A stretch of DNA of 64,000 nt, taken from positions 1 to 64,000 of the forward strand of contig NIVC01003511.1 of the NCBI GenBank assembly GCA_002269645.1. The letters are read 5' to 3'. The notes beneath the pieces were generated by a model. The model saw only the letters and a list, made by a program, of their open reading frames with translations, ran no database searches and was not told where the DNA came from. The translations under genes and the position numbers were made by a program. Positions 6,072 through 48,553 of the stretch are shown here, piece by piece (position 1 is the first letter of the stretch; every line of letters begins with the position of its first letter). Source of the stretch: Macrostomum lignano. Taxonomy: Eukaryota.

Positions 6072-8000
6072 CAGTGATGGGCATAGCGGGCACTAAATTT
6101 GAAATTTGCTATGGTGCCACTACAATTTTTGAAATTTGCTAATATTGCTAAATTGAAATTTGACTTAGCGTATGCTACAAAAGTGCCACTACATTTTGCT
6201 CAAATTTGCTAAAAATTGAAATTTGCTAAATTTTAGGCAACTAATTTTCTTTTATATCGTTTTTTAGGGTTTTCAGTCTTGTAAACAATATTGTTTTACT
6301 GATTTTATTTTTTTTAATATTTTTTAATGTACATAACGCAACAGTATTTAGAATTTATAATCAAGTCATGTATATTGTACTGATATTGTCATACTGATAC
6401 TGGTAGGGATAGAAATAAAATAAATTGATAGTCAGTCATATTCATAGTCATAGGACTCATAGATAGATCATAGACTGATGCTGATGTCTAATAGACAATA
6501 GTGATAACTGATAACTGATGACTGATGAGTTTAATTTTTCTTTTTTCTTTTTGTTACTTGTCCTGTTTTTCAGTGTTGGGCAATTCCGTTACCGAGTAAC
6601 TTGCAAATGGTAACGCAAGAAGTCCATTACAGTTACTTTGCAACAATCACAATATTTAAATTTAAAACTGAAATGCTTAGCTATTACGCCGGTTGTCACA
6701 TGTTTTTGCATTTTTCATTCCTAAATTCAAAATTAAATGAATAGTATCATATGGTATTGCGCTTAATTAATGAAGAAATACTTGAAACATGTTTTACTTT
6801 GTTAATTTCGGTAAAATATTTTCGCCTTTCATTTTCGTTACTAAAAATTTTCAAGTTTGATTCAAACAAACAACCAAAGAAAGAAATTCATCTGTAGTCT
6901 CCACAAGTCCCTCCACTGGCACTGCAGTACACTGCACCATTTTATACAGTTCTATTTATTTTACTCTATTGAATTATTGATATTCGTTCATTTTATCATT
7001 TATAATTTTAATTATTGATTGCCATTGCCCATTGGTCCTTCTACTTGCCTCACATTGTGTCGCCAATTCCTGTCTCTGTCTGGTAATCGGTTAATCCCAA
7101 TGCCCAATGGCAAATTTCGGTAACAACAATGTGAAAAATGTGCAATGTGAAAAAAAAACAGAAAATTTTGTTAATAACATGGGTAACGGAAGTGAGTAAC
7201 GGACAGTAACTTAAAAGTTACCAGGTTTTTGTCTAAAGTTACTAGGCTAACATAAGTTACTTTTTAAAAATTGGTAACTTAAGTTACAGTAACGCAAGTT
7301 ACTTTTTTTAAGTAACTTGCCCAACACTGCTGTTTTTTGCTACTGTTGTTCTTGCTGTTTGTTTTTTGTCTAAATAATTATTTTATCTCCTAAATAAGTC
7401 TATAAATGTTCATTTTAATTTTTAATTTATTCAATTTCTTCAATTGCGAATGCCATAAGTATAATACAATTCCATAAATCAGTAATTCAATCAATTCTAA
7501 TAGTAGAATTTAAATAGTCACGTCAATTACTATCACTGACTACTGACTAGCAATGGTGACCAACTTGGCAACTGGCAATGGCAGTGGCAACTTATTAAGT
7601 AAAGTTACTAAACTTACTATGGTACTACTGTCTGTTAGTATTAGTGTTACTATACTGGTTACCTTACCTTATCCTTTGGCTTTGCACAGTATAAGTACAA
7701 TTAACTTTTTTTAATTTGACAAATTTTTAACTAATTTGCGTTTTATTTTAATAAATATAAAGTAAAATCTTTCTAATATTCACAAGCTTAAACTAAAGAA
7801 AAGAAAAGGTAAATATGAATATTTTTTTCATGTTTTTAGGAAAATTTAAGTTTCAGCAAATTTTATATTTAGTGGCACTATAAATTTGCTAATTTTGAAA
7901 CTAAAATAGCAGCCACTATATAGCGCTAACTTTTTTTAAATTTGATAGTGGAAATGCTATATAGTGGCACTACAAAAATATTTAGTGGTGCCCATCATTG
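6072..8000. mobile_element. Non-autonomous hAT-type DNA transposon (1929 bp)
   Basis: TIR CAGTGATGGGCA / TGCCCATCATTG (11/12); 8-bp TSD AATGTTTC at 6064-6071 and 8001-8008; subterminal gccacta/tagtggc repeats. Confidence 0.88.
6571..7329. mobile_element. hAT-type MITE (759 bp) nested in the 6072-8000 element
   Basis: Perfect 13-bp TIR CAGTGTTGGGCAA; 8-bp TSD CTGTTTTT at 6563-6570 and 7330-7337; gtaac/gttac subterminal repeats. Confidence 0.92.
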
Positions 8001-9071
8001 AATGTTTCTTGCATTATTGTTTTAAATAGGGTATACCTAGTGTTAATTATTTCTACCGAGTGTATCAATTCTTGCTCATTACATGTAACCCTCTATCCTA
8101 CCTAGGGTGACCTTTTTCTTTCTGATAGCTTATGAGATCATATTTAAGAGTCTGCATCCCTTTTTCCCACTAGACTCTCAATTGAGCTCATCCGCTTCCT
8201 AGATTCCAAGTTCCAAATATTTAAGTGGACCCTAAGTGTAAGCCCAATTTTTCAGACCCAACTAGCTACTCTCCCAATTAGCCATCTAATTAATTTGCTC
8301 CATGCTAATAACTATTTCTTGTTTACATCTTTAGCCATTTAAATAGTAATAACTATCTAGTTTAGTGTTGCAATAAATTACAAAGCAGTTAAATTGTGTG
8401 TTAAATGGTGTCTTAAACTTTTATGACCTTGGAAACATTCATTTGACCCTTGGTGGTCTTACTCAAGAAAAGTTCTAAGGTAGATCTGAGTAAATTTTAA
8501 CTTTAGAGCATTTTTCTATGAATTATTGTGGTAGAAATAGCAACCTACTACTCTTAGTACAACAGTCAGCAAATTCTTGTTTATTTAAAGTTTTTTGTAG
8601 CAGCTTCATTTCTGCATATTGGCATTCTAAGAGACAGCATTAACTAGACCACTGTTACAACCACAGCTAACCTCCCCATGAGCCTAACTAACTTAGTAGC
8701 CAGAAGAGCTCCCTATATTTTGCAGTCTGTGTCTCATTCATAAATGCCCAACCTCAAAATTTTCTCTTGTCTAGTGCGATTTAGTTTTGTCTAGATTTGC
8801 AACTTAGTTCCTCCCAATTGTGACTTAATACTTAGTTCCTTTCAATTGTAACTTAATTTTCACTTTGTATATGACTTTTCTTGTTTTTTCCTTTTTTCTC
8901 TTTTTTCCTCTCTTTCTTTTCTCCCTCCTTTCTTTTCCTTTGTCTTCCTCTCCTTTCTTTCTTCCCCCAATTTTTTATTTTTTTATATTTTCAATTTTGT
9001 GACTTACCTTGGCTAGCAGCCATTTTACATATCTAATTTGGATAGGTCATACAGGTGTTGGGCATGTATAG

Positions 9072-9348
9072 CATACATGCGCAACCCCCCTGATTTACAC
9101 TGGCCATGCGACTTACTTTTTGACCAGAAATGCGACTTACCTGTGAAAGAAACCCTAGAGCAACATTAACGTAATTTTGGGTAAACGGCAGGAGTAACTA
9201 TGACTCTCTTATAAGGGCTAAATGCCTCGTCATCTAATTAGTACTACGTCTGTATTCTTTGGGGTGGGCATTTTTGTGACTTACCCCTGGTCCACCACAA
9301 TTTACGGTGGCCAGATCAGCCAGGTCGGCCAGCAGTTGCGCATGTATG
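9072..9348. mobile_element. 277-bp MITE-like element E1 carrying a 28S-rRNA-derived core
   Basis: Perfect 14-bp TIR CATACATGCGCAAC; 8-bp TSD ATGTAT(A/G)G at 9064-9071 and 9349-9356; core 9134-9244. Confidence 0.85.
9179..9242 (+). other. 64-nt 28S rRNA fragment (H69-H71, R2/I-PpoI target region); not an rRNA gene
   Basis: GGGTAAACGGCAGGAGTAACTATGACTCTCTTA-taagggct-AAATGCCTCGTCATCTAATTAGT vs the conserved eukaryotic GGGTAAACGGCGGGAGTAACTATGACTCTCTTA-AGGTAGCC-AAATGCCTCGTCATCTAATTAGT (57/64 ungapped). Confidence 0.92.
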
Positions 9349-11528
9349 ATGTATGGTCTCATTCAAGTTCCTTTTAAATCATAATAACATAAAGACAAGT
9401 GTTAATTTAAACAGCCTAAAACCAAAGACTAATCACCAAGATGATTGTTTCTAACCCCCATCTTTATGACACTTTGAATGTCTATTGCCAAAATATCATT
9501 GCCTATTAGAACTGGACATTCATATATATATATATACTATTTATAATTTATAACTGTAATTTTTCAAGAAACTGCTTTCCATTGCTAGGGACTCCAATGA
9601 GATTATAGCATAAATTAAAAAACACAAAATATAACCAAAGCAGTACTACTTACTTAGGAATGCAAAAAAGTTATATAATATAAAATATAAATGATGAGTT
9701 AATATACATTTTAGGAGCAAAAAATGCTTTAAAATAAGACAAAATATAGATCAATTGGACAAATTTTACAAGTTATATTGAAGACAAGTTTTATATTTTT
9801 GCAAGAATTTTACAATAGTGACTATTATAGAAAATATTATTCTTTTGTTTTTTTAATTTTTCGAAGAAACACTTTATTATAATATAAAATTGTAATGTTA
9901 AAAGCATTCTAGATATAAAAATGCTATTTAAGGCCAACATTTTTTTAAGTTTTAGATTTCACCAAAAAATCATGTTTTTTAACTTAAGATTGTTTTGTTT
10001 TTGTTTTCTAATGGGCAATGTCATAAGCCACAATATAAGGTATCACAAAAAAACTTATATAAAGAAAAAAAGGTATATAAAAAACTTTTAATTGTAATAT
10101 TATCTACAAAAAGATAATAGTCCCTTAAAGGCAAAATACATTATAAGCCAAAAAACTCAATGACAAAATTTTGCATAACTTTTTTCATCCAAATTTCAAA
10201 AGTGAGATGTCGACTCTTACTTCTACAAACAAGATCTATCAAACTGCATAAAAGCCTAGCCTAATAAATAAAAGTAAAAAATAGAAGTTTCAAAATCTCA
10301 CTGGAGTCCTTAACATTGCCACTTAATTTGACTTTATAGCCTAATGCAAAGTCATTCTATTATAAATATTTTGTCCTAGGGCTTATTTCTGTCCTCCAAC
10401 TATCTTACTAATTGCCACCAAAGTTGTGCTAGGGGTTATTTCTATCTCACCAAGTTGTAATAGGTTTCTAATTTCCCTTTATTAAATTTCTACTGCTGAC
10501 AATAAATCTTGCCTTAATGTTTCTAACTGTTTCTTAGAATCTCATATATTTTCTGGGTAGCATTCTTAGTAGTGTTCTGGTAGCATTCTTAGTATATGGT
10601 CTGAGCAGTCAGCAGTCTTACTAGTATATATACTTTCTCTCTTTCTCCAGTCTAGGCATTACCAAGATTAGAGGATCATAGCGATCACTCTTAGTATTCT
10701 TTTTGCATGAATTCCCACTTCTGACTTTCAATACTACTTTACAAGACTCTTAGAAATGAACAACAATCTGAGAACTAAATTCATTTATATTCTATTGAAC
10801 AAGTGAACACAAGTATTATACGAGTGCATGAGTTGGTCTTCCTACCTCCAATTTCAAACTTCGCTCTTATTTATACCACCTTGACTATATATATTTATAA
10901 CAAATGTAGAATATTAGGATTTTTTGCAAATTAAAACAAAACATAGGCCCTAATTTTCAAGTAATTTTTTTAAATAAGGTTTCCTAGAAAACAATAACTG
11001 CTTCTACAATTTTGATTACAATAAAACTTTATTTTTAAAATTTTAATTAAATAAAACCCAATAAATAGATAGCCTAACCATTAAAAATGTTTATTTTTTA
11101 TAAAAAATAGCCTAGGCCTATCAATATAAAAATGTATACTTCTTAAATTTCCCATTGTCATTTTGTTCTCATATGGGTTTTATGGCTTAGAATATAAACC
11201 TAAGATATTGATAAGTCTAGTTCTCTAGTACTTAAAAACAAAATTTTAAGTGCTAGGCCTAGTGCTAAATTACCTTAGATAGCCAATTTAGCACTAGGCC
11301 CTAAATATTTCCTAAAGGCATAAAACTTTTACCAAACACATTAATAGTAGAATTATATGAAAGTAAAAAAAGATTATCCTAGATCATGTGGTTTTTTAAA
11401 GTTAAGTTAATGAAATGCACATTTTAAGCATTAGGCCCTATAAAATGAAGCTACTGCCAGTATCAGTATGGCTGGCTGACCTCCAGGCCTCCAGCGCCAC
11501 AATCTATTGTCCCTGCTGCTGAAGTTAA

Positions 11529-11660: not shown

Positions 11661-12414
11661 GCATTTCGGCAATATCCTCTACTGGATAACACACTACTAC
11701 CCTATGTAGAACTCTGTGAACTCTTGCAAAAACTTTGTGAGCTTATCGGACTCTGAAAAGTTCAAAAGGGGTTCAAATAATTTAGAGCGGGAAACCGAAG
11801 GATCGCCTGAAGTAATTGGCGAAATCCAAAAACGTGGGATAAAACGGTAAAACAAATCTGCGGACATTCGATGGAAAGTAATGTATCTAAAAAAGGTTTT
11901 TGAAAGATAGATAGGTCTTTAGAAAATAGTTCTGGATAAAAACTATTGTTTTCATGCTTTATATTGTTGAATAAATAAGAAAAAACCACAAAAAAGCATT
12001 TTGAAAGTCCGAGTTGACCGATTTGCTATTTTTTGTTTCACTTTTTTTCATTATTAAACAATTAATTTTAAGACTTGTAGGCCTTAGAGAAGGCTAATTT
12101 TTTTACTACTTACAAAACAGAAAGTAATCTGTGTTTTACTTTTTATTCAATTCAAAAAGATGAAGTATTTCTAAGGATTTCAAAGTTTTTCTAAAACCAT
12201 ATAAACTCGCAAAAATTCATACTAATATAAAGTGCAAAGTTTGCCAGCAAACATCTTTTTCTAAAAGTAAATATATCGCTAATTCCTTGTTGCAAAATAA
12301 TCTTTAAGTTGTTTTCTTTCATTTAAATATCAACTTGCATAGTATTAGTATTTGTAATATGCCTATATTTAGACTTAAAAATTTTGGGTAAAAAATGGTA
12401 CCACAAAATGTGAA

Positions 12415-12940
12415 CCCGGCATCCAAATCAGATGCTTACTGTATGCTCATTAAGCGACGAAGAACAATGAAATTACACTAAAACATGTATCATCGCGGCG
12501 TGTATGCAGGAAAAAAAGAATTTTCCAAATCGCTTCAGTAGAAGCTGAGTAAAATGCAATTTTCCAATCCTTATGGGAATTCCAATGTGTTACCCGGCTT
12601 CCAAATCAGATGCTTACTGTATGCTTATTAAGCGACGAAGAACAATGAAATTACACTAAAACATGTATCATCGCGGCGTGTATGCAGGAAAAAAAGAATT
12701 TTCCAAATCGCTTCAGTAGAAGCTGAGTAAAATGCAATTTTCCAATCCTTATGGGAATTCCAATGTGTTACCCGGCTTCCAAATCAGATGCTTACTGTAT
12801 GCTTATTAAGCGACGAAGAACAATGAAATTACACTAAAACATGTATCATCGCGGCGTGTATGCAGGAAAAAAAGAATTTTCCAAATCGCTTTAGTAGAAG
12901 CTGAGTAAAATGCAATTTTCCGATCCTTACGGGAATTTGT
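12415..12940. repeat. 178-bp tandem repeat, ~3 near-identical copies
   Basis: ccaaatcagatgc at 12423, 12601 and 12779. Confidence 0.95.
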
Positions 12941-17222: not shown

Positions 17223-18594
17223 GGCTGAAATGAGAAATAGAAATACTCTTAATAATGGGAATATGTTGGAAATATATACATGACATGTTTGTGACATCAA
17301 ATAAAGAAATTCATATTGTCTGAAACCAAAATAAAAAAATTGTTATTCATATTATATGTATATTTGTGTTTATATTTATAAACAAGCTGAACACACAAGG
17401 AGACATTTAATGCTACAAATAATGAAAAATGTACACTTGCACACCCTAGGATGACAGTTGCATGAAAAAAGAAATTGCTATATTGACCAAGACTGACTTA
17501 GTACCAGAAGACAATAGTATAATCATAATCAAATAGCGCAACAATAGGGAATTACTATATATTCACCTCCAGATGATGGCAACAAGAAGCACTTTCTGCT
17601 TGCATTACCAGTAACAACATTACGTGTCACATGGTAAAATCCAATATTCAGAATTTCTGATGAATATGGACTTGTATACAAAGGATGCGAAAACTTTAAC
17701 ACATGACCAGTTAGGACATTTCCTACTACTGTACTAATGAGTATTGGAACTCCATTTACAACTGCACAATTATTTGGAGACAAACAAATTCATAAAGATG
17801 GAGCAAAGTGTGAGGGTTATAAGAAATTGATGCTTCACCATACAATGACTACATTTCCTTAACAAAAATCTCAATACAACGATAAGCATTTGGTAAGAGA
17901 GTCTGGTGGACATCAGAGCAAAAAACATAGATAGAAAAGTGCAAGTGAAGAAAGTGGTCATAGTATTTTTGTGGTAAAAACTTTCTGAAGAAAAAAGGCC
18001 CCAAATATAGCAAAAAGAGTCGAAACTCAGTTGCTTTAAAGTGAGCTAAATTTGTATCAATACGGCGAGGCCTCCGCTGAAACTCAGCAGGAGTGAACTT
18101 GGCATAGCTATCAATAAAATCAGACAGCTCTTTTAACTTTAGTGCTGAAATCTTACAAGATGAACCAAACTTAGATGAAAAAAGAAAATTAAAAACTTTT
18201 CTACAAACACCTAAACATACAGCATGTTGATAGTCAGGTGGAAAATGAGAATAAAAACCAATATTTTTAATACTCAGCAAAGGTGTTGAATGCCCTACCT
18301 TCTGGTTATTTTCTTTAGAATCAGCATAGCACTGATCAGTTCGCAAAGTACCAATAGAAGATGAAAAAACAATACGATTAGCAAAATGTCTACCTTCAGC
18401 TTGACAATAACTACATCCCATGCGAGAGTTATGGTTCATAATAGAGCAGATATGAGCATGAGCAGGGGCATCACAAACAAAAAGAGCACGGACTAACTTA
18501 AAATGGTGGCCAAGAACTTGAATACCATTACTAAAAAAAATGTTTAGCTCTTCACAGAAGCGTGATAACAAAATATTCAATGATGGTTTACTTT

Positions 18595-18873
18595 CCCTAT
18601 TGCAGCGCATGGCTTAAGTACGCCAGACGCCTACACAACCTGCGCCACGCTGTGAAATGACTTACCTGTGAAAGAAACCCTAAAGCAAAATTAACGCAGT
18701 TTTGGGTAAACGGCAGGAGTAACTATGACTGTCTTATCAAGCCTAAATGCCTCGGCATCTAATTAGTACCGCGCCGCGCTGTACTAATCGCCGCGCGTCG
18801 TACGCGCCGCGCCGCGCCGTATTAGATCCGCGCCGGACGCCGTCCGCCAAAATGCCCATGCGCTGCAATCAGG
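18595..18873. mobile_element. 279-bp MITE-like element E2 carrying the same 28S-derived core as E1
   Basis: 14-bp perfect inverted repeat ATTGCAGCGCATGG within CC...GG ends; TSD TTTACTTT (18587-18594 / 18874-18881; could be read as a 10-bp GGTTTACTTT); removal restores the transposase frame VGKSKPSLNILL. Confidence 0.88.
18704..18767 (+). other. Second 64-nt 28S rRNA H69-H71 fragment
   Basis: GGGTAAACGGCAGGAGTAACTATGACTGTCTTA-tcaagcct-AAATGCCTCGGCATCTAATTAGT (54/64 ungapped to canonical 28S). Confidence 0.9.
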
Positions 18874-21138
18874 TTTACTTTTACCAACAAAAATAGCAAT
18901 GGGCAATGGACGCAAATAGCCTGATACTTTCATTAAAATTGGCCAAGCTGACATGGAAGAACTATTATACAAGGGCATTCCATCTATATTGAAAATGGAA
19001 TTTACTTTTATGTGCCCAGTTTCAGAATCAGTAATGCATTTTGAAAAGTCAAAATAATTATTGCTAACCCAAAATTCCAAATTTTTGGCCATTGATACAT
19101 AGAAAAAGTCTCCTTTAGTAGCAATAATAGAATAATAAGAAGAATTAGCAGAATGCTTTTTCAAGCCATATACAGACTTTGGAACTGAAATACCCTTGTG
19201 ATTTAAAAAGGCAAGGATCCAAGCCATAGCAGAGCGTGACACATTAAAAAGTATATAAAATAGAAGCAGTTCTTGCTCAATTGTTAGCTCTGGCGTAGCA
19301 TCTTCAACTTCAGGTATATCTTGATCCTCTTCTACAAGGTCTTCATCTGATTCACTATTATCCATTGGATTGCCCTGACTGTTGCCAAGAAAGTCAGTGT
19401 CGTATTCTTCAGCTTGAATGAATTCTTCATCTTGTTGATGATTATTGCCTTGGGTTTGATCTTGGTTAATGGGTTCAGATGCTTTTTGAAGCTGCTCTAC
19501 TTCAATTTCCTCTAAACAACCCTGAAGCACTTTTCTAGCAAAGTTACGTTTGGACATCATGCAAATAATTCACAAGTAAAATCATTTATATCACAATATC
19601 TTATAGTAATTGGCAAATAATACTATACTATACTCATACTATATTTACCATGAATAATTATAAACAATTACATTCTTTTATTTCTATATATACCTGGCAC
19701 TGCACAGGCACTAGCTAAAGCATATAAATATTTATAGCTAATATATATAGCTATGACATAGCTATAGTAATATGGCCTACAATACAAAATAGTTATACAA
19801 ATATAGCAAATATATAACAAGGAAAACACAGCATCTACCTGGCATTTGAGGAATTGATCTACACACACATAGTAGCTAATAATTGATATGTTCCTAGGCT
19901 ATAGCCCATAAAAGCCCTAAATAAAGTAAAGATATAGTGGGTTAAAGGTAAAGCTATATACTGTCATGCTTGCTGGGTTAAATTGCAAAGAACAATTAGG
20001 CATTGCACTTCCACTGTTGCCAAGCCATGTGTGTTGTGTACATTTATGCAACTAAAAAAAAGAAAAAACAATTTTGAAACATGCATAGCATGTGAGTTAA
20101 TCATAATGACATAAAAAGATAGCTAGCCAGCTAATTCAAAAGTGAAGTTTGCAAAGGATCTGCAATACAAGCCATCCACAAAATAAAACACGTGAGCATG
20201 AAAATCGGAGGAAACTATATGCTAAACAGACCATCAAAATAACAAGTATGACAAAAATCCACATTCTCCTGCTCCAAACAGAAATTGCAAAACAATATTG
20301 GTACTATGTAAAATAGACGTGCGTCGTGATGCTTTGCAACATATAAGTTTATCAAACCAATTTTGTCTACTAATTATTAACAAAAAACTGCACAGTAGTT
20401 GCCAAAAGAAAACACTTTACATAATACGTACTGTGTAGAGCAAATCCAACTTAGTTCTAGAGTTATTACACAATTCCCTGACCTCAGTTTTACTCACAGT
20501 CTTTTTGGGAAATTTGGTTTACCGTTGAGAAACAACGGCAATTCAACGAAGAGCAATCACAACGGTTTTACAACGGTTTCACAACGCACTTCAAAAAATG
20601 AAATATTGGCTCAGTAAGCAAAATAAAAGCTTTTTTAATTGCTTACGAGCCATTTTGGGTACAAAGACAAACTTTTTTGTTCCCAACGCTTTTGTGACAT
20701 ACCTCCGTTGAAACACCGTTGGATCAACGTTGTCTTTTCCACTGGGACTTGCTTTGCCGAGCACGCAGCCACAGTCAGCTCTCATGCATTGTTTAACTCA
20801 GCAGAGCTCGCAGCATCCCAATGCTCCTGCATCTCTCACCCCGCTGAGCAGAGCAGCTGCCGCGGACCCCCGGCACCCATAATCAGCCCTTAAACACAGC
20901 CGCTGGGTCAGAGAAGAGAATCGGCCTCAGTCCATTTAAACAAATTTCTCTGCACAGGGAGAGCTCAGAGATTTCAGTCCGTGACAGCGGGATTTTTGCT
21001 GCTGCTGCTGAGCTGGCAGGCAAATTCGCTTGAAGAAGAGCAAAGCACTCAGTTTGAAGCCGTGTGGAACAGCTGCGGCAGACAGCAGATCGGCAGAGAA
21101 GCGCTGCTAGGAGAAGCAGTGTAGCCAGGGCAACAGAG

Positions 21139-24100
21139 ATGGAGCGGAAGCTGAGAGCGGCGCTGGAGTCTGGAGACAGCGAGGAGCTGCAGCGACTGTG
21201 CGGTGAGATCGACAGCAACATCGAGCTGGAGGTGGGCGGGTTCAAAAAGCAAGAATTTTCCTTGAAAGAACTTCTTAAAATGCCGCTGGTCCATCACGTG
21301 GCCTGCAAGCCGGTGAGTTCGTCGTGTCTGGAGCTGCTGATTGACAGATTCGGACCCGACTGTCTGAAAAACAAAAATGATAGCAGTTTTTGGGATGTCG
21401 GTGAGACTCCAATACACTTGGCTGCCCAGCATCAGGATGAATCTTGGATGAAGCTCGTTAAAGAGAAGGGAGGCAGCGACTGCTTGACAATTGTCGGTTT
21501 TTGCAAACAGACAGTCGCTCACTTTGCCGCTATGAACAGAAAAAGCAACTCTTGTCTAAAGTGGCTGGTGAAGGAGCTCGGCAGCGACTGTCTCACAGTT
21601 CCTGACGAAAACGGTACCACGGTTGTCCGTTTAGCGGCTTTGTATCAGGGCATCGAGTCTCTGGAATTGATCAAGAGACGAATTGGAACTGAATGGTTTC
21701 GGCTAAAAGGAGGACTGTGGAATAGAACAGCATTTCACTTTGCTGCTCAGAAGTCTGACAATTCAAATCTGAAGTGGCTGGTGGAGGAGCTCGGCAGGGA
21801 CTGTCTCACAGTTTCTGACAAACACGGTGACACGGCCGTCCATTTGGCCGCTCAGCATCAGGGCATCGAGTCGCTGGAGTTGATCAAGAGACAGATCGGA
21901 ACTGACTGCTTTCGGCTGAAGACAAAGAGTGATAGAACAACATTTCACTTTGCTGCTCAGAAGTCTGACAATTCAAATCTGAAGTGGCTGGTGAAGGAGC
22001 TCGGCAGCGACTGTCTTACAGTTCCTGACAAAGACGGTGACACGGCCGTCCATTTGGCCGCTAAGCATCAGCCAGTGGACTCTCTTCAGTTCATTTTTGA
22101 CAAAATCGGAGCCGATTTGTTCAGCTTGAAGAGCAACAGGGGCATAACACCGGCTGATGTTGCTGAGAGTGATCGGTGCCACACAGACCAGTCAGCAAAG
22201 CGGGCCTGGATTTTCTTCACTCAACGGCAGCTCGAAGCCTCTCGGCCTCCCGCTGGCAGCTCAGCGCCGACTGCCGCCTCAGCTGGGTGAGTCCTGACTG
22301 ACAAATAAAGTATTGAATAGCTTTTTTGCGAAAATTTAATGGGTCGTACTATAAAACTGTCGTAGCTAGTTCGATCGTACTTTGCGTTTTGTCACTTCTC
22401 CATCAAACAAATATTGCTATCAAATTTATAACTAGACACAGTAACAGTTTTCATGTAAAGGTTTTCGGCTAGTGCAATGGTAAAGCTACAGGTAAGTTGT
22501 TTTACAGAGTAACTTCTCAAGTTCAAGTACATTACGCCAACCTTTTTATGTGTAACGGGTTGGAACCTCTCCGAGGAAACTACTTGAATGTTCTGGGATG
22601 TTGGCACTTAATTTATATTGGCTACCTGTAATGCAAAAGCTAGCAAAGCCGGAAGTGGCACTGTGAAACTCGATACCCTGGGATTTGCATTATCTCAGTT
22701 TTGAAGCTCTGAAAACGCACTGCATGGTAGTTCAGAAAATCGGTGAAGCATTTTGAAGTCCAGCTGGCCTGTCATTCTGTTGCGTGAGAACTGAAGCAGC
22801 TGCCGCAATGGGAAGGCAATGGGTTTCGAATGGGTTTCGAATCTGATAGCGGATCTCAGAGCTATGGGTGTTTTACCTGGGAGTCAGAGCTGCAGGTGTT
22901 TCGATAGGGAGTCAGAGCTTTGGGAAAAAAGGTTTCCTATTTGGCAATAAGCAACTGCCTCCCTCATTTTCCCCACAGCGCTGCAGCTCCCAGCCCAGCC
23001 TCATCGGCCGCTCCTGAGCAGGGAGCTCACGGGGTTCGAGCTCCGGACTGCAATTCTGCAGCTCCCAGCCCAGCCTCATCGGCCGCTCCTGAGCAGGAAG
23101 CTCACGGGGTTCGAGCTCCGGACTGCAATGCTGCAGCTCCCAGCCCAGCCTCATCGGCCGCTCCTGAGCAGGAAGCTCACGGGGTTCGAGCTCCGGACTG
23201 CAATGCTGCAGCTCCCAGCCCAGCCTCATCGGCCGCTCCTGCAGAGCAGGGAGCTCACGGGATTCGAGCTCCGGACTGCAATGCTGCAGCTCCCAGCCCA
23301 GCCTCATCGGCCGCTCCTAAGCAGGGCGCTCACGGGGTTCGAGCTCTGGACAGCGTCACGCCACTGTCTGGACCGACTTCGGCATCCCAGAGGGGACCGC
23401 CTGAGGCGACTTGGTGAGTCCGCGCTGAAACTATGAGTCAGTTGATGACGCAGAAGGCCGAAGGGTGGTGACTTACTTTACTTAGCTGCTAGGGACTCCG
23501 TGCATCCGGATGCAGCGAGGGGAGGTGTTGCCGCCCGTTTCGCTAACCCCTGGCGACCACGGGCAGCTGGTGCTGCGGTATCGCGCAGGGAGATCCGGCG
23601 GTACCGGTGTCCACAGCGCGGCTCCTCCAGGAGGTGGATGGTGGCTCGCCCGGTAGCCTTTAGGTAGCGGCAGAGCTGGCAGGGACTTAGGAGCTGGCAG
23701 AGGTTCTCGGGCCTGATAACGTCGGAGAGGTTCGGCTTTGGTCCGAGGTAGGTGAGCCTGTCCTGAGTAAAGGCGGGGCATGCACAGATGAAATTCTCAG
23801 CATTCTCTTGATCCCGGAGTTATAAAAAGTGCATTTTCACTGTGGGTTTTCCCTAAAGGTGGTGATGCCTGGCAAAGCAGCCATGACCCGAGAGGGCCAT
23901 ACTACAAGACCTAGTGACCTAGTGTTCCTAGTGGTCCTTGAGCCCACCTATCCCTTTGCTTTGAGCCTGCGAGACCTGGAAGCAGCGGGAGGCCTGCTTA
24001 CACTCTCGGACGGAATTCCGTCCACGCTCTGCCCTCCGCTCAAATTCAAAACCAGCATTCCACCACGTCATGAGGCCAGGGACAACTGGAACCCCATGAA

Positions 24101-25991
24101 ATCCACTGCTTCACTGACGGGTCCCAAATCAACTCTGCCTCTGGCTGTGGCTACTGCATCGTGTCTGGAGGGAGAACTGTCGCGACCTTCTCCCAGCACA
24201 CTGGCAACCTGCTGCACCGTCTTCCAGAACGAAGTTCTCGCCATCAGCTCCTGCGCCATGGAGCTGCACAATCAACGCATCTGGGGGAAACCACTTGAAT
24301 TTTCTGGGATATTGGCACTTAATTTATATTGGCTACCTGTAATTCCAAAGCTAGCAAAGCCGGAGGTGGCACTGTGAAACTCGATACCCTGGGATTTGCA
24401 TTCTCTCAGTTCTGAAGCTCTGAAAACTCACTGGGAGTTCAGAAAATCGGTGAAGCATTTTGAAGTCCAGCTGGCCTGTCATTCTGTTGCGTGAGAACTG
24501 AAGCAGCTGCCGCAATGGGAGGGCAATGGGACTTGCGGTTTGGGTTTCGAATCTGATGGCTGATCTCAGAGCTGCAGGTGTTTCATTTGGGAAGAGATTT
24601 TCCCTTGAAATGGTTTTTCCTCTCGGGGCTTTGGTATCTGATATTTTGGGGCAGTCATCAGCTGCCTCCCTCATTCGCTCCCATAGCTCTGCGGCTCTGC
24701 ATCCCCGGCCTACCTCATCGACTGCTTATGAGCAGTGCGATTACGAGTTCCGAGCTCAGGACTGCGTCAGGCCATCTGGACCGATTTCTGCGTCTGAGGA
24801 GGGACTGCCTGAGACTCAGTGAGTCCGTGCCTAAAATAACAATTTTTTAAGCAGAAGGGTGGTGGTTATTCAGAAGGCTGACTCAAAAGTACTCTGGAAG
24901 CAACAAAACGTGTCGAGTTCCCTTAATTACATCCTGTTTTCAGAGCAGAGAGGCAGCTGGACCCCAGCTTCACCGACTGGGACTTCATCCTGCATGGCAA
25001 AAAGAAGCAGCTCATCGGCCGTGGTGGATTTGGAAAGGTGTACAAGGCCGTCACAGACCGCAACCAGACGGTGGCTGTCAAGGTGCTGCCTCTGAGGGAC
25101 ACCGGCCAATCGGGGAAGCTGCAGAAAGCCGTCGAGATGGAGAAGCGGGGAGTTGAGATCCTCAAGCGACTCTCGCATCCCAACATTCTGAAGCTCCTCA
25201 AGTGTGAGCTGAAGTCGGATGGGCTGTACATCTTCACCGAGCTGGTCTCGGGTCACAGCCTCTTTGAGCTGATGCAGCGTCAGCACAAGCCGTTCAAGGA
25301 GTCTGAAGTCAGGGACTTCTCCAGACAGGTGCGTCTCTGGGCTCTCTGGGAGTTGTGGAATCGGGGATCAGTGTGGGATCAGTTTGAGATCAGAGTGGGA
25401 TTAGAGTGGCATCAAGAATGGATACATGCATTTTTCGACAGGCTAAAGCTGCTCCACCTGCAGATCTGCTCAGGCCTGAACTTCCTGCACTGCCAGCCGG
25501 AGGGCGCCATCTTACACCGCGACATCAAGAGCGGAAATATAATGCTCACCGACGAAGGCGTCATCAAGCTGATCGACTTCGGTCTCGCCAAGGAGATCGT
25601 CGGCACCTGCGGCCTGAGCACAGGCATCGATCCCAAAGGCACCTCCTACTTCCTGGCGCCCGAGCTGTTCATGGGCGAGGGCGACTCGATTCCGTACTCA
25701 GCCAAGACCGACGTGTGGGCCTTCGGCTGCACTGTGTATGAGCTGACGACCATGCAGCCTCCTGACGGCAACGAGCCGCAGTTCAGGATCGGCGTGCTGA
25801 GGTCCGGAGGGCGGGCGATGCCTCGGATTGTGGACGGGTTCTCAGCCGGCCTGAAGGACTTCTACATCAGGTGCGTAGACTATGACCCGAGGAAGCGAGC
25901 GGACACCGCGGAGCTGCTGGGGCACAGCTTCCTGAGAGTCTCATCGCGACTGCGAGAGCGACGGGCTGTGAGAGAGCGGAACGAATCTTGA
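21139..25991 (+). CDS. Ankyrin-repeat protein kinase, paralog A: join(21139-22286, 22979-23413, 24687-24818, 24944-25328, 25464-25991), 875 aa
   Basis: ~9 ankyrin repeats (GDTAVHLAA / RTAFHFAA); all introns GT-AG and phase-compatible (2,2,2,0); kinase motifs IGRGGFGKV, VAVK, HRDIKSGN, DFG, APE (STE/MAP3K-like). Confidence 0.88.
22979..23345 (+). repeat. 75-bp coding repeat (25 aa, AAAPSPASSAAPEQGAHGVRAPDCN), ~5 copies, in exon 2 of paralog A
   Basis: Period 75 (22981 vs 23056); in frame in the gene model. Confidence 0.9.
23471..24289 (-). mobile_element. Truncated, partly inverted copy of the 27130-29600 non-LTR element in intron 2 of paralog A
   Basis: 23471-23807 is the reverse complement of 29273-29600 (3' end and AGTA tail); 23963-24289 is co-directional with 28459-28783 (RNase H start). 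Confidence 0.88.
24290..24860 (+). repeat. Internal duplication of intron 1 end + exon 2 + intron start (paralogous to ~22575-23470)
   Basis: Near-identical ggcacttaatttatattggctacctg...gccgcaatggga blocks at ~22604 and ~24313; exons 2 and 3 share their ends. Confidence 0.88.
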
Positions 25992-26419
25992 AGCGGTCTT
26001 TTTCGCTTGCTGACACCGAAAGTTGCCTGTTAATTATTGAATTAGATAATTAATTTGATAATTAGTTGTCCCTTTTTCTTTATCTAATGCCCTTGCTTAT
26101 CTGATTGCTCTTTTTGTTTATCTAATTTTTGTATCCCTGAATTCCTAGCCTACGGGGTCTGTAGCGGACACAGGGTACACTACTAGTACACTCGCACGGG
26201 TCGCCAAGGAGTGCTTACAATTTCCCAGCGTCTAAAGCGTCGGGACGCACCCATGATACCTTCCCACGCGTCGGGAAGCGGTGGTCGGAACGCTCTGGCT
26301 CGCGTACAGATGACGCAATCCAGTATCGATATGTCTAACTTAGGACGGCGTCAGGTCACTCGGACTATCAATTTCTTCTGCCAACCGAATGACGGAATTA
26401 CTTGGTTAGCTGTAGAGGC

Positions 26420-27129: not shown

Positions 27130-30150
<3,021 letters not shown>

Positions 30151-32260: not shown

Positions 32261-35072
32261 CGAGTACTTCAAGTACAATATTTGTAAGACTGCTACACAG
32301 AGCCTAAACTTTTCGTCCCCTGCTGCTGGAGGGGGAGGGTTCCTTTGTGGTTAGCAACGCCCGGGCTCAAAAACAAACACATTCAAACGGTTTTACAATA
32401 AATTAGTACGTTGCTATGGGGCGAGATAATTTTTTATTATCAGTAATTATTTTGTCTAGGTTAAGTTAGAGCGATTAGGGACAGTCAGACTGAAGTCTTG
32501 TGCGCGCATCAGACCGCCGGTCCAGTCCAGCCCCTTGGTTGCTATGCTCCTCGGGGTTGCTCATCGGCGTTGGGGTGGCTGCTGCTTCTTCCTCTCCAGT
32601 CGGCCAATTTTCACACTTACCAGAACTGACTTCGCTTATCTCACCTGTTTTGCCTGGCACCGCACCGACTGGCCTGGTATCTGGAATGGAGGGTGGCTGT
32701 TCTATTCTTATCATGCTCATGGTCCCCGCTACTTACCTCTAATCGTCCGATTCAGACGCCTTATCTTTCACTTCTACCTTTTGCACTTCTAAGCTAAGCT
32801 CGCCTTGCTCGGCGCTGTTTTACTTTAACTTCTTTGTGCAACTTATTCTCTGCTAATTTCTAATTCCTATGGTTCTCACTGATCATTTATAGCTCGAACA
32901 ACAATGAGTACTCAGGGATAATTTCTGTTTGTAAATAAAGTTCAATATCAACATTAAGTTTTAGTTATTTATTTGAGTTGCCGATGGATTTCGTCCAACA
33001 ATTGGACATCTTCAGGGTCGAAATTTATTTGAACCAAATTATTGAACACAAACAGTATATATAGTGAGTGGAGAGAAGTATTATTGGTAACCGAAATGCA
33101 TTCTTCCCCTACCAATGCTTCTACTTTCGATTAATATGTACAAGTTTTTAAACCATCAAAATTACATGTACTCGTACTTTCATACTTCTCCCCACTCACT
33201 ATATATACTGTTTGGGTTCAATAATCTACTTTTTCTACTTTTATTCAATTCAATTTATCTACTTTTCATTAAGCGAGCCACTTTGCCTAATTTCTGTTTA
33301 ATGTTCGATAATCCAACTCTTATGTGATTTTTATCCGACTTTAATGCCTTGTTTTCGAGCCCACATCGAGCCCTCATTTAGAAGTCCGTTGCAACCAGAA
33401 AAATTGCTGCTTGGGCTGCTCGGGGTGAAAGGTGATATCTTTTCCACCCACTTAAAATTCAAGTAAGACAAGACAGATTTCTTTCTTAAATGCTTCAAAG
33501 ACTGCGACAGATGACCTTTAATAGAAGAGCAGTGTATTTTAGTAACATATTGTGTAGTATCATGAAAATTGATATAAGAACGAATTAAGGCGAGCATACA
33601 CACACACGTACACACGAAGAGAATTTCTGTAGTAGAATACTTCGAAATAGTTGCTGTCATTCAGAAAGAACTTCACTCATCCTCATTGTCTTAGTTCGGC
33701 ATCCATATTGGCCTCTTGACCGCATTCTTCCTGGACGTTGCTTTCGTTTCCTGACGTTGTTTGTTGCAGCCGCACGAGTCCAAAATCGGTACCACACCGG
33801 AGCTTCTTGCAAGTCCGTGTCCTCTGGCAGGGATGTTCCCAGCATCGGCTGAGGGCATCTGAGGGCGTTGAAGTCACCGGCTGGTTAACGATCGTCAGCT
33901 CTGTTGGTTAGCGGGCATCCTCTCTGCTCTCATTCAGTTCAGTCTTGACTGGTAGCTTCACGGTGTCAAAATCATCTTCATCAGTGTCAGATGAGCTCAG
34001 CTCGTACTTCATTACTTAACTTGTCATCCAGCTGGAAGCTTCCCACGTTTTTGCCTCATGAGCGAAGGCAGGGGCAGGGTGCATGAGTTTCACGAACTCC
34101 TCACAACAGTCCTCTGACAGTCGCTTAAACCAAATTATTCTTTGTCTGACTTCGACGAACTTGTCGAAGCCTAACTTCACCACCTTAGTTTCCCTGCTTA
34201 GAGCGGCCTCACGAGGGAGCGGTTTACCTCTTTCAGTTTCGCCTACTGACGCATATTGAGGTTGAAGCTGGGAACTAAAGGCTTGAGGCTGATGACGCTG
34301 CCTTATTGCTTCATTATTGCAAAAAAATTCTGTCTTTAGAATTTTGGCTACCCTAACGTACGTGCCTCACAGAATCGTCTTTCGCAGATTCGCAAATACT
34401 TTTTTCAAAGCTGCTCCCTTTGCGCTAGTATATCTATGGCGGAGTGGGGTGAGTGCCGGAGGGAGGATGCTGGGAAAAAGGCTTGGTTGGTTACATTGGT
34501 ACGTCTCACTCCAAATGCATAGCACTTCACACTCTGCAGGCATAATGCTAGGCTGGGTTTTCAAATAGCTCGTTAAGCAGGTATATTTATAGCTACTGAG
34601 GCTTCCATATGAATAGGTTTTTATTTGCTGTCTAAATTAAACGAGTCAAATTTTCAACATTAAAACAGTACGTGCAGTGACAGAGACTAACGTCTACAAA
34701 ACTATACGAGTACACCTCTTGTTTATAACTCGATTACGCTTATCATATTTATAACTCCGGTTAGCGCAGAGTTGTGCAGCTCCACAACGACACTGCCCTA
34801 ATCTTTAACATTGCCGCCTATCTCCCTAGGGAAAGTGCGTCAGCGTTCAACTAACCCACACTACTATCCGCCTCAGTCCATTTAAACAAATTTCTCTGCA
34901 CAGAGAGAGCTCAGAGATTTCAGTCCGTGACAGCGGGACTTTTGCTGCTGCTGCTGAGCTGGCAGGCAAATTCGCTTGAAGAAGAGCAAAGCACTCAGTT
35001 TGAAGCCGTGTGGAACAGCTGCGGCAGACAGCAGATCGGCAGAGAAGTGCTGCTAGGAGAAGCAGTGTAGCC

Positions 35073-37677
35073 ATGGCAACAGAGATGGAGCAGAAGCTGA
35101 GACAGGCGCTGGAGTCTGGAGACAGCGAGGAGCTGCAGCGACTGTGCGGTGAGGTCGGCAGCAACATCGAGCTGAAGGTGGGCGGGTTCGACAAGCAAGA
35201 ATATCCCTTTAGGCAGCGTCGCCGAATGCCGCTGGCCCATCACTTGGCCTGCAAGCCGGTGAGTTCGTCCTGCCTGGAGCTGCTGATTGACAGATTCGGA
35301 CCCGGCTGTCTGACATATATAAATGACAGTGATCAGACTCCAGTGCACTTGGCAGCCCAGCATCAGGACGAGTCTTGGATGAAGCTGGTTAAAGAGAAAG
35401 GAGGCAGAGGCTGTCTTAGAAATGTTGATCAGTGGGGGCAGACAGTCGCTCACTTTGCCGCTATGAACAGAAAAAGCAGTTCTTGTCTAAAGTGGCTGGT
35501 GAAGGAGCTCAGCGGCGACTATCTTACAGCTCCTGATAAAGACGGTGACACGGCCGTTCATTTGGCCGCTAGGCATAAGGGCATCGAGTCGCTGGAGTGG
35601 ATCAAGAGACAGATCGGAACTGACTGCTTCCGGCTGAAGGGGTGGTTGGATAGAACAGCATTACACTTTGCTGCTCAGAAGTCTGACAATTCAAACCTGA
35701 AGTGGCTGGTGAAGGAGCTCGGCAGCGACTGTCTCACAGTTCCTGATGAATACGGGAGCACGGCCATCCATTTGGCCGCTCTGTATCAAGGCATCGAGTC
35801 GCTGGAGTGGATCAAGAGACAGATCGGAACTGACTGCTTTCGGCTGAAGGGATTTTGGGATAGAACAGCATTTCACAGTGCTGCCTGGAAGTCTGACAAT
35901 TCAAATCTGAAGTGGCTGGTGAAGGAACTCGGCAGCGAGTGTCTCACAGTTCCTGACAAAGAAGGTGACACGGCCGTCCATTTGGCCGCTCAGCGGCAGC
36001 CAGTCGACTCTCTTCAGTTCATTTTTGATCAAATCGGAGCCGAAACGTTCAGCTTAAAGAACAACAAGGGCAAAACACCGGCTAATATTGTTGAAAGTGA
36101 TCGGTGCCGAACAGACCAGTCAGCAAAGCGGGCCTTGATTCCCTCTACGCAGCGGCGGCTCGAAGCCTCTCGGCCTCCCGCTGGCAGTTCAGCGCCGACT
36201 GCCGCCTCAGCTGGGTGAGTCCTGACTGAGAACTGCAGCCTGACACTGAAAATACTAAAAATATTTTTGGTGAGAATTAATTGCGCTTTGATGATCGGCG
36301 CCCTGAAATTCTCATCAGAGCCACAGTAAAGTGAGGGCGTCACGAATTTGTCAGGGCAGCTCCTCATGGCGCTTCAACCTCCTGATGGAAGATATTCGCC
36401 TCATTCGCTTCCCACAGCGCTGCAGCTCCGCGTCCCCGCCCCCGAGCGCGCGAGCGGGTCAAGCCGTCTGGGCCGTCCGAGGGGGGACTTTCTGAGGAGA
36501 CTGGGTGAGTCCACGCGGGGAGACACGGAAGGTTGGTGACACAAAGGCTGAGTGACTCCAAAGTACCAGTACTTAGGAAGCCCTAATCAACACAAAATTC
36601 ATCGGATTCCTTCACCTCAATGTTTTCAGCGCCAAGAAGCAGCTGGACCCCAGCTTCACCGACTGGGACTTCATCCTGCAGGACAGCAAGAAGCAGCTCA
36701 TCGGCCGTGGTGCATTCGGTGAGGTGTACAAGGCCCTTACAGATCGTATCCAGACGGTGGCTGTCAAGGTGCTGCCCCTGAGCGGCACCGGAGAATCGGG
36801 GAAGTTGCAGAAAGCCGTCGAGATGGAGAAGCGGGGAGTTGAGATTCTCAAGCGACTCTCACATCCCAACATTGTGCAGTTCCTCAAGTGCGAGCAGAAG
36901 TCGGATGGGCTGTACATCTTCACCGAGCTGGTCTCGGGTCACAGCCTCTTTGAGCTGATGAAGCGTCAGAACAAGCCGTTCCAGGAGTCCTGGGTCAGGG
37001 ACTTCTCCAGACAGGTGCGTCTCTGGGCTCTCTGGCATTGCCTGGCATGTGTGGAATCAGGTGGGATCAGTGTGGGATCAGTTTGCGATCAGTGTGTGCG
37101 ATCAGTGTAGGATCAGTGTGGGATCAGTGTGGGTGAGATCCAGAATGGATAGATGCATTCTCATGACTGCTCAAAACTGCTACACCTGCAGATCTGCTCA
37201 GGCCTGAACTTCCTGCACTGCCAGCCGGAGGGCGCTATCTTGCACCGAGACATCAAAAGCGGAAATATAATGCTCACCAACGAGGGAGTCATCAAGCTGA
37301 TCGACTTCGGTCTGGCCAGGGAGATATTCACCACCTGCGGCTTGAGCGCAGGCAACCCGCCAAAAGGCACCTGGCACTTCATGGCGCCCGAGCTGTTCAT
37401 GGGCGAGGGTGACTCGATTCCGTACTCAGCCAAGACCGACGTGTGGGCCTTCGGCTGCACCGTGTATGAGCTGACGGCCATGCAGCCTCCTGACGCGAAC
37501 GTTCAGAAGTTCAGGATCGCCGTTCTGAGGTGCGGAGGGCGGGCGATGCCTCGGATTGCGGATGGGTTCTCAGCCGGCCTGAAGGACTTCTACCTCAGGT
37601 GCGTAGACTATGACCCGAGGGAGCGAGCGGACACTGCGGAGCTGCTGCGGCACAGCTTCCTGAGTGCCTCATCGTGA
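35073..37677 (+). CDS. Ankyrin-repeat protein kinase, paralog B: join(35073-36214, 36418-36504, 36630-37014, 37192-37677), 699 aa
   Basis: ~9 ankyrin repeats; phase-compatible GT-AG introns; IGRGAFGEV, VAVK, HRDIKSGN, DFG, APE; total length 2100 nt. Confidence 0.9.
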
Positions 37678-41410: not shown

Positions 41411-41654
41411 GCTGGGCGCCGATGTCTTTTGTTAAACCCCGCTGTCTCCAGGTGTGGACCGGTATCTCGGGCCGGTTGGAGGTACATCCAAGAGTGGCAA
41501 AAGTTGAGCTCGCTCATCTCATTTATCAAGTTTTGTTGCCTCGCATTTTTTCTTGGAGTAAATATGGGAAAACTATAGGAGATTCATCATGGGAGAAATT
41601 TTATTTTTTTATTTAGTTTTCAAAGTATGTGCCTTCACCAAGCGCCACATGGAA

Positions 41655-43720: not shown

Positions 43721-44464
43721 GGATTGCTTCCAGGCGAGGCCCCGGCAGGCCCCAGGTCAACACTGCAAGATCAGGGGGCGGGAGGCCGGCTGTAGGTTTG
43801 GGACCAGACGCCAGGTCAGAGTGACAGCTGACGCCCAAGCCCTCCTCCACAGAAGTGGCCCTTGAGAACAGTCAGCAGCCAACTACTCAGCAGCCACCTG
43901 CCCAGCAAAAAGGCAGCAGGGGGGATCTGTTCTCCCACAGCCAGGCCTGAGCGAAAGAGGAGGGAGAAACCTCCTCGGAAACGAAAAGCTGGCAGATGTC
44001 ACTGAGTCCCTCGGTTTAAGTTGCCATTTCCCCCCCTCCCCCATTTGCTGTATAAATTAAACGAGTCAAATTTCCAAAATAACAACAAAACTCGGAATGC
44101 CACAGCCTAATGTTTACAGCGCAATGCGACTCTCAGGTAAAACTCCGGCTTATCTTATTCAGAACTCCGCTTATCGCACAGTGGTGCTGCTGCATTCCGA
44201 CACTGCCCTATACTTTAAGACTGCCGTGCCGCCTATTTTCGAAATGCAAGTGCGTCAGAGTTGAACCAAGACATGCTACTTTTAAGGACAGATCACTTTT
44301 GCTGCTGCTGCTGAGCTGGCAGGCAAATTTGCTTGAAGAAGAGCAAAGCACTCAATTTGAAGCCGTGTGGAACAGCTGCGGCAGACAGCAGATCCGCAGA
44401 GAAGCGCTGCTAGGAAAGAGAAACCGGCATGGGGAACACTCGAAGTGTAGCCAAGGCAACAGAG

Positions 44465-48050: not shown

Positions 48051-48553
48051 TCATTTTTTTTATATAACTGTTTTGTTTTTTGAACTGCTCAGATTTGAAT
48101 TTATTATCCATTTCTCTATCAATTTTCCTGCTGCTATCAGATGTTCGAATCAATTATCCAGTCATAGTTTTGTTTATTCAGCTGCGACCCGCAACTTAAA
48201 TTTTGACTTCCGGGTTTGTTTTACTGGTTGCTCCTTTCACAATGAGACATTTTTGTGCTGACTTGAGTGCTATTTCAGTTTTAAGCTGATCAAGGTTGAT
48301 TTTGAAACTCTGGCACAAAGACAATCCCAATTCTCTAATCTACTCAAACTGCTCAATGCCTACTCCAGTGTAGTGTGAGCGTCTTGTGTTAATTTTTGAG
48401 TTCTATTAGCTAGTTGATTGTATTGTTGTCGATAATTAATTTGCTTATTTTAGTCACGCGTTTTTTCAATGTACTTTTTGTCTCTTGAATAAAACAGATG
48501 AGTAGTTTCACCACCTTCGAGAGTCCTGCTTGTGTTGAGACTCGAAGAAAAAA

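Follow-up and report, generated by a model that had tools for sequence, protein, structure and literature searches.

How does a short piece of the 28S ribosomal RNA gene come to lie outside ribosomal DNA, with its two sides kept almost letter for letter and its very centre replaced? This is the question raised by two places, named E1 and E2 here, in a contig of the flatworm Macrostomum lignano (NIVC01003511.1, assembly GCA_002269645.1), of which a stretch of 64,000 nucleotides (1-64000), the window in what follows, was analysed as a whole. The replaced letters stand at a 28S site that is a known target of R2 retrotransposons, of I-PpoI and of group I introns. An earlier note on this DNA had seen there a target mimic that could be bound and not cleaved, a survivor of cleavage-driven selection, or an antisense guide. 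We reconsider these proposals within the context of the two fragments, a feature which is real and non-random, and we argue that it is most likely a scar or a relic.

Table 1. Positions in the window of E1, E2 and the sequences around them
Feature	Positions	Strand	Remarks
E1 module	9127..9245	+	52-nt non-rRNA part, starts GAAATGCGACTTACCTG, ends TTTT, then 28S fragment
E1 28S-derived fragment	9179..9244	+	flanks 55/56; R2-site coordinates -36..+30; Rfam LSU_rRNA_eukarya ~2244-2310
E1 rewritten centre	9212..9219	+	TAAGGGCT (canonical AGGTAGCC); -3..+5; R2 RASIN, I-PpoI site core
E1 unit, 277 bp	9072..9348	+	perfect 14-nt inverted repeats CATACATGCGCAAC (9072-9085), GTTGCGCATGTATG (9335-9348)
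E1 unit flanks	9064-9071; 9349-9356		ATGTATAG; ATGTATGG
Diverged partial copy of E1 right arm	8992..9071	+	starts TTTTGTGACTTACC, ends GCATGTATAG; ungapped alignment to 9269-9348, conserved blocks
E2 module	18654..18770	+	direct repeat GCGCCACGCTGT (18642-18653) / GCGCCGCGCTGT (18771-18782) on either side
E2 28S-derived fragment	18704..18769	+	flanks 53/56
E2 rewritten centre	18737..18744	+	TCAAGCCT (canonical AGGTAGCC); -3..+5
E2 unit, ~277 bp	18595..18873	+	inverted ends CCCTATTGCAGCGCATGG, CCATGCGCTGCAATCAGG
Transposase-like pseudogene split by E2 unit	17541..19560	-	tblastn match broken at 18853/18613

A 28S fragment altered at the R2/I-PpoI site

Positions are numbered here from the R2 insertion point, TTAAGG^TAGCC. 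When the window is searched with the canonical upstream flank GGGTAAACGGCGGGAGTAACTATGACTCTCTTA and the canonical downstream flank AAATGCCTCGTCATCTAATTAGT, each of them has exactly two matches, where shuffled sequence leads one to expect none by chance. At E1 the agreement is of 32 positions out of 33 upstream (9179-9211) and of all 23 downstream (9220-9242), at E2 of 31 out of 33 (18704-18736) and of 22 out of 23 (18745-18767), and the spacing between the flanks is of exactly 8 nt in both. The upstream score of E1 holds for one allele only, as an allelic contig (L023) has, for sole difference in 300 nt, G and not C at -9, as in E2; both upstream changes, to A at -25 and to G at -9, were thus already present in the common ancestor of E1 and E2. 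The flank scores, the replaced centre and the 8-nt spacing that had been announced for the two places are in this way borne out by the pattern search, as they are by Infernal and by the Fisher tests reported below.

The 28S-derived piece, 66 nt in length, has sharp ends, at -36 and at about +30, with the R2 site near its middle. TTTT directly precedes the -36 start of the 28S similarity in E1 as in E2, and near the downstream end both copies read AGTAC for AGTGAC, through the deletion of 1 nt. Neither the 52 nt that come before nor the sequence that comes after shows a likeness to 28S beyond that of shuffles (z about 0). Compared by Infernal with the Rfam family LSU_rRNA_eukarya, both copies align at ~2244-2310 (E = 3.5e-6 and 3.3e-4), in alignments that span just 55-115 model positions and reach 25-33 bits against a gathering threshold of 50, and the window holds no LSU match at gathering level; we can therefore understand E1 and E2 as fragments, not as genes. 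Because the sequence beyond the bounds is at shuffle level, the weak extension of the Infernal alignment in E2 is without meaning. In Rfam scans of 8950-9400 and 18550-18920 at E <= 10, LSU is the only convincing match, the others being at chance level (E 2-8), in the E2 stretch and outside the module, and no ribozyme family appears.

That the few changes in the flanks break, rather than compensate, the pairing of helix 69 had also been proposed. It is so for G-25A and C-9G, which lie in the H69 stem; the others, T+16G and the 1-nt deletion, lie in the hairpin that follows, and Infernal marks non-canonical pairs in both places. A functional 28S rRNA gene is accordingly rejected, since we deal with a fragment, with broken helices, outside rDNA. 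Furthermore, as E1 differs from E2 and both stand in a non-rRNA context, they cannot both equal the rRNA sequence of the host.

It is at the centre that the two copies depart from 28S. E1 is mismatched there at 6 positions of 8, against 1 of 56 in its flanks (Fisher p = 2.5e-6), and E2 at 7 of 8 against 3 of 56 (p = 1.5e-6); the clustering of substitutions in these 8 nt, which the earlier note had set as a check, is found in both copies, and the alteration differs from a decay spread evenly. Nor can the sequence be read as the canonical centre inverted. Compared with each other, the two centres differ at 3 positions of 8 and the flanks at 2 of 56 (p = 0.012; 1 of 56 using the L023 allele). The centres have in common 5 derived bases of 8, where about 2 would be expected under independent rewriting, so that the rewriting would largely be one event, which came before the copies separated. 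The further changes common to both, G-25A, G at -9 (in the L023 allele) and the AGTGAC-to-AGTAC deletion, are of the same kind, and what E1 and E2 share points to a probable single origin. The centre may later have changed faster than the flanks, which, with two copies, is only suggestive.

Structures of R2 place an upstream motif, RUM, at -34 to -22, and RASIN at the cleavage site (PMC12222951). RUM is identical at 12 of its 13 bases in both copies, the sole change, G-25A, being at a base contacted by R2Tg. RASIN, with the cleavage core TTAAGG^TAGCC, is not intact, as -3 to +5 is altered at 6/8 (E1) or 7/8 (E2), and the 15-bp site of I-PpoI, CTCTCTTAAGGTAGC, is absent, with 10/15 left in E1 and 8/15 in E2. 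In co-transcripts the R2 ribozymes cut 28S at distances of 36 nt upstream or less, so that R2 RNAs carry at most 36 nt of 28S (Eickbush et al. 2013, PMC3774820); the upstream bound of the fragment, -36, is the furthest upstream of these cleavage positions (PMC3774820). With the R2 site near the centre of the fragment, a bound at -36 and a patch that keeps within the cleavage core, the feature is tied to activity at the R2/I-PpoI site, and the link with this site claimed in the earlier note is supported, the fragment extending from -36 to +30 around the R2 nick.

Collections of other DNA provide a background to these observations. An exact pattern scan of metagenomes for centres of the E type gave no match, and a looser one gave 17 loci, 16 of which are real 28S genes with single-base variants. 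In these genes (L002, L003, L005, L006, L011, L016, L018 and others) the sequence is TTATGGTAGCC or TTAGGGTAGCC, and the first base of the centre (TTATGG, TTAGGG) is therefore naturally variable. The remaining locus, L008, is an unrelated short 28S-like piece of ~48 nt at the same site, with centre GGCTAACC, on the minus strand at 1616-1651 of contig Ga0302324_100338212, a nematode-like rDNA spacer where the 28S 3′ end, an SL1-like RNA gene and a 5S gene stand on one 2.3-kb contig. Having been found by an exact-flank pattern, L008 says nothing on clustering; what it tells us is that short ectopic copies of this 28S stretch exist elsewhere. A scan of a collection of genome contigs gave contaminant 28S only, and the eukaryotic 28S of CANRHE010000113.1, a contig from a MAG that bears the label Sphingobacterium, is probably contamination; scans of viral contigs gave no match.

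Could E1 and E2 then be ordinary rRNA pseudogene fragments, where chance, or a local hypermutability unrelated to R2 and I-PpoI, gathered the changes in one place? Short 28S-like pieces outside 28S genes, such as L008, and the variation of the first centre base in real 28S genes would lend some weight to this idea. It has to face, however, a Fisher p of about 2e-6 in each copy, and the coincidence of the patch with the one 28S site where R2, I-PpoI and group I introns are known to act, on which the fragment is moreover centred, and we find it scarcely credible.

The module and the units that carry it

The description of an rRNA-like segment was correct, and it missed the context: the segment is part of a module of about 117 nt, itself within an insertion bounded by inverted repeats. 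E1 and E2, on the same strand and 9.5 kb apart, have 117-119 nt of module in common, with 91% identity. The 52-nt part begins GAAATG(C)GACTTACCTGTGAAAG and is without a match to an Rfam family, and the 28S fragment makes up the 3′ half. Between E1 and E2 the non-rRNA part differs at 5 positions of 52 and the 28S flanks at 1-2 of 56, a difference that is not significant. On neither strand does the predicted fold of the module surpass that of shuffles (z 0.25 to 1.65); whole units fold chiefly through their inverted ends (z about -2.4).

A search with nhmmer found no copy of the module in the window other than E1 and E2. Twelve M. lignano loci, taken via annotated proteins, amount to 249 kb, of which ~180 kb is non-redundant with the window; they hold no additional copy of the module or of a unit arm, and E1 comes back in them only at its own locus, on two contigs that are near-identical. 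With only two independent copies in ~245 kb of M. lignano DNA, the module is low-copy, at least locally.

In each unit the module starts ~60 nt from the left end. Several traits of MITEs can be recognized in this arrangement. Terminal inverted repeats of 14-18 nt are present in both units (the termini include CATACATGCGCAAC and ATTGCAGCGCATGG), those of E2 being either perfect over 14 nt or matched at 17/18 with one gap. An 8-bp target-site duplication is seen in E2, where the direct repeat TTTACTTT stands on both sides, or GGTTTACTTT if the ends are put at 18595-18871, the choice of boundary shifting it by 2-4 nt. In E1 it is 8/8 if one uses the state of a second copy of the region, L019, whose left flank is ATGTATGG; this evidence is weaker, because in E1 part of the repeat is at the same time the complement of the terminus. 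Homology over the full length of the copies is absent, the arms of E1 and E2 resembling each other at shuffle level (z -0.2 to 0.35), and these unrelated arms within the same architecture speak against a simple model of one MITE family with cargo, which does not explain them. Immediately upstream of the E1 unit stands the diverged copy of its right arm.

E2 lies in a transposase-like pseudogene of the 'Transposase domain-containing protein' family, with PF13960 in a few distant matches, the kin of which are Idotea baltica proteins annotated as contaminants together with 'transposase domain' proteins of insects and flatworms; near 17.8 kb it also shows a stop codon in frame and a change of frame. 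The alignment of homologous proteins breaks off after ...GKSKPD on one side of the E2 unit and starts again with SKPSLN on the other, and taking out the unit with one copy of the repeat restores ...GKSKPSLN... The E2 unit interrupts this pseudogene, and is therefore a true insertion.

As for E1, the second copy of the region (L019, NIVC01000031.1), 92-98% identical, is without 1552 bp that include most of E1: 44 unrelated nt, beginning TTTTAGTAAGTC, stand at its positions 7374-7417 instead of 9141-10692 of the window. It keeps the left arm of E1 and the first bases of the module and breaks after GACTTAC, and the start of TTTTAGTAAGTC makes an inverted repeat with this preceding GACTTAC. As the break is inside the module, in a complex indel of 1.55 kb against 44 nt, we do not have there a clean empty site.

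The motif GACTTAC(C) is found in one orientation at 9001, 9110, 9134 and 9278, in E1 and its surroundings, and at 18659 in E2. Being complementary to the 5′ splice-site consensus, this motif is like the 5′ end of U1 snRNA, the minus strand reading CAG|GTAAGTC. Its count in the whole window is not above chance; its clustering around E1 is striking.

Other features of the window may be recorded here. It contains a CBF/Mak21 exon, 99% identical to a Macrostomum lignano protein, and an ankyrin-repeat protein kinase gene present as three paralogues in tandem (21064-26000, 35010-37700 and 44429-47100, the middle one being P0077 itself), with 64-100% protein identity, from a family which has many members on other M. 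lignano contigs. Long inverted repeats at 23521-23807 and 29273-29551, ~5.5 kb apart, in blocks of 105-117 nt that are 90-91% complementary, enclose the kinase part of the first of these genes; a (TAGA)n array comes next, at 29600-30150. The window is unusually rich in minisatellites, which have periods of 19-31 nt and reach 69 copies (for example at 39829-41413, 58988-60361, 61824-63407, 47178-48063 and 12407-12937), and there is also a 178-bp repeat with 98% identity.

A possible scar, retroposed cDNA, mimic or guide

The reading that we prefer, tentatively and with somewhat less than even confidence, is that of an ectopic 28S fragment carried in non-autonomous elements of low copy number; at the R2/I-PpoI site this fragment would bear a lesion, or the scar of a junction, older than both copies. 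The 3′ 66 nt of the module would have been taken from 28S rDNA, or from a 28S-containing RNA, exactly around this site (-36 to +30), and the module, placed in the middle of a non-autonomous insertion of ~277 bp, would be passive cargo. The centre, from -3 to +5, would then be the trace of a site-specific insertion or endonuclease event, perhaps an R2-type nick or break, or an insertion since lost, repaired without restoration of the sequence at a time before E1 and E2 separated. A site scarred in this way would still resemble the upstream recognition motif of R2, and would no longer be cuttable, or usable as an R2 target. Since an intact ectopic site would be open to R2 insertion, only scrambled copies would be expected to persist uninterrupted, and a survivor of cleavage or insertion at the site, one of the possibilities raised earlier, appears to be what fits the data best. 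Flatworms are known to host R2, non-specific R2 and 28S-targeting NeSL elements (PMC5035012), and a literature search found no paper on R2 in Macrostomum.

We infer both a scar origin and the absence of a present function. It must be recognized that repair of breaks usually yields indels: the exact 8 nt kept in both copies hints at a constraint on spacing or at a change of the substitution type, and counts against a scar of break repair. Against the preferred reading stand also the unrelated arms of the two units, the indel by which L019 ends inside the module and the small number of independent copies, which is two. This preserved spacing, together with a like architecture around unrelated arms, is unaccounted for by every reading considered here.

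A quite different history, unlikely in our view, would make the module a retroposed chimeric cDNA, produced by an R2-type reverse transcriptase from a template RNA with its 5′ end at 28S -36, such as an R2 ribozyme leaves; from there the enzyme would have switched to another template, entering a small RNA at its UUUU 3′ end, the resulting cDNA would have been inserted by target-primed reverse transcription, and the inverted-repeat units would be mere landing places. The 28S similarity indeed begins exactly at -36, after TTTT, in both copies, in keeping with ribozymes that cleave at most 36 nt upstream in 28S (PMC3774820); the low copy number would agree with this history, as would the unrelated arms of E1 and E2, expected if the module alone moved. 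The E2 module is flanked by a 12-nt direct repeat with an 11/12 match, which is only suggestive since it lies in CGCGCC-rich, G+C-rich low-complexity sequence, and no clean target duplication was found around the E1 module. Against a retroposed cDNA, an R2 RNA starting at -36 should run into R2, and not, after 8 nt, into downstream 28S. The like position of the module in inverted-end units of equal size would be left unaccounted for, and for the 52-nt 5′ part, which ought to derive from the small RNA, there is the lack of any matching Rfam family.

What, then, of a function? Read as a selected R2-target mimic, with its spacing and flanks kept around a variable 8-nt centre, the module would be engaged without cleavage by an R2-type protein, or by an RNA derived from the module, a proposal to which we grant a low probability. 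As a decoy or docking platform, it would let a non-autonomous element exploit or blunt the machinery of an rDNA-specific retrotransposon, which seems to us just as improbable. The more precise version in which the R2 protein binds without cutting, the module either titrating this protein as a decoy or serving as docking site for the carrier element, may find some comfort in the flanks kept from -36 to -4 and from +6 to +28 with RUM almost intact and RASIN destroyed (PMC12222951), in the exact 8-nt spacing of both copies, and in the fact that E1 and E2 have diverged least in their flanks (1-2/56, as compared with 5/52 for the non-rRNA part). As a structural description, the bindable but uncleavable target of the earlier note is a fair one. 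Its decoy or docking function is unsupported, however, and we consider it improbable: two copies in ~245 kb cannot titrate a protein that has hundreds of rDNA targets, G-25A falls on a base read by R2Tg, and the differences in conservation are non-significant except at the centre.

The last proposal was that of an antisense guide: a minus-strand RNA, within the transposase transcript in the case of E2, would pair with two stretches of 28S, of 33 + 23 nt, leaving at the R2 site a bulge of 8 nt, and would serve to guide, or to block, some process at the rRNA or the rDNA. E1 and E2 are indeed antisense to neighbouring minus-strand genes, and the module, when read on its minus strand, has a consensus 5′ splice site at its end. 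Nothing resembling a structured RNA accompanies these facts, however, as snoRNA boxes and an Rfam family were not found and the fold of the module is that of shuffles on either strand; the transposase gene hosting E2 is a pseudogene, and we know of no class of guides using a 33 + 23-nt duplex with an 8-nt bulge. Unsupported in this way, both the pairing and the guiding or blocking role seem very improbable.

Several established classes were also considered and set aside. An R2 element, or a deletion derivative of it (SIDE), would not fit a sequence that is not in 28S and has no ribozyme. Neither a hammerhead or HDV ribozyme nor snRNA identity is suggested by a convincing Rfam match. A SINE with a head of a known type is set aside for want of similarity to tRNA, 5S or 7SL and of an A-rich or simple-repeat tail, the only possible target repeat being the 12-nt one of the E2 module. 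A guide of the snoRNA type has no convincing family match and no special fold, the one weak C/D-box match, to GlsR6 (10.3 bits, E = 7.6), falling beyond the module, at 18579-18630. For an introner, the minus-strand 5′ splice site is at the wrong end, which rules this class out.

Related elements and significance

Sequence derived from rDNA is known in transposable elements in few forms: the 5S heads of SINEs, SINE28, the spacer repeats of Pokey and the 28S-like UTRs of R2 (PMC10946416, PMC5035012). A review of the subject (PMC10946416) has no 28S R2-site fragment in an inverted-repeat element. The systems nearest to E1 and E2 are R2 families, SINE28 and Pokey/mPok. In R2 families, 28S-like sequence is found inside the element, in the 3′ UTRs of fish R2 and in Hydra R2Hm-B (Kojima et al. 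2016, PMC5035012), and at the 5′ ends of Ciona R2 (Eickbush et al. 2013, PMC3774820). As in E1 and E2, a mobile element there has a diverged copy of 28S abutting the R2 site, and the upstream extent is in a like range, with 5′ ends of R2 RNA up to -36 and 110-130 bp in fish. Those R2s are, unlike E1 and E2, autonomous and in rDNA, with the 28S-like part on one side of the site; in E1 and E2 the carrier is non-coding and lies outside rDNA, both sides are spanned and the junction is rewritten.

SINE28, for its part, is not known to have inverted ends. This mammalian, 28S rRNA-derived family (Longo et al. 2015, PMC4994717) is, like E1 and E2, a non-autonomous repeat made partly of 28S sequence, and, having been proposed as a SINE, would use RNA for its movement. 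A high copy number is reported for newly proposed SINEs of such a type (as cited in PMC5786205), and SINE28 is listed among 28S rDNA fragments without a link to the R2 site (PMC10946416). What separates E1 and E2 from it is a low copy number, ends made of inverted repeats and the place of the R2 site at their centre.

Pokey inserts at a TTAA of the same conserved 28S stretch and makes TTAA duplications, as is usual for piggyBac. This piggyBac element of Daphnia and the mPok MITEs related to it (PMC4912750, PMC10946416) resemble E1 and E2 by their DNA-transposon type, by a link to one specific site in 28S and by internal sequence derived from rDNA. Unlike E1 and E2, Pokey inserts into 28S, and its rDNA-derived part consists of spacer repeats, whereas our units stand outside rDNA, between repeats of 8 bp, and what they carry is 28S coding sequence.

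Among MITEs with 8-bp duplications (hAT-, P- or Merlin-like), the units would find their place as small elements with no ORF and with short terminal inverted repeats, one copy of which is within a transposon gene. The resemblance stops at the termini, which differ between the two units and are off YARNG: as regards hAT, the 8-bp repeat fits, while the ends CATAC.. and CCCTA../CCTGA.. do not. The arms are, moreover, unrelated, and no homologous family was found. Finally, orphons, the dispersed fragments of rRNA pseudogenes, are likewise short pieces of an rRNA gene, without function and away from the rDNA array; in E1 and E2, unlike in orphons, the decay is non-uniform, with flanks 95-98% intact around an 8-nt centre almost fully replaced.

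A native centre and the centres of E1 and E2 make a simple pair of reagents that would separate binding by R2 from cleavage, and R2 proteins are now used for gene insertion. The value of the whole observation would rise sharply if constraint on the flanks and on the spacing were shown. If functional, the module would be the first natural decoy for a site-specific retrotransposon. More generally, an R2 recognition window borne by a transposon, with its core scrambled, would record the pressure of R2-type endonucleases outside rDNA, and E1 and E2 would show us what a resistant R2 target looks like.
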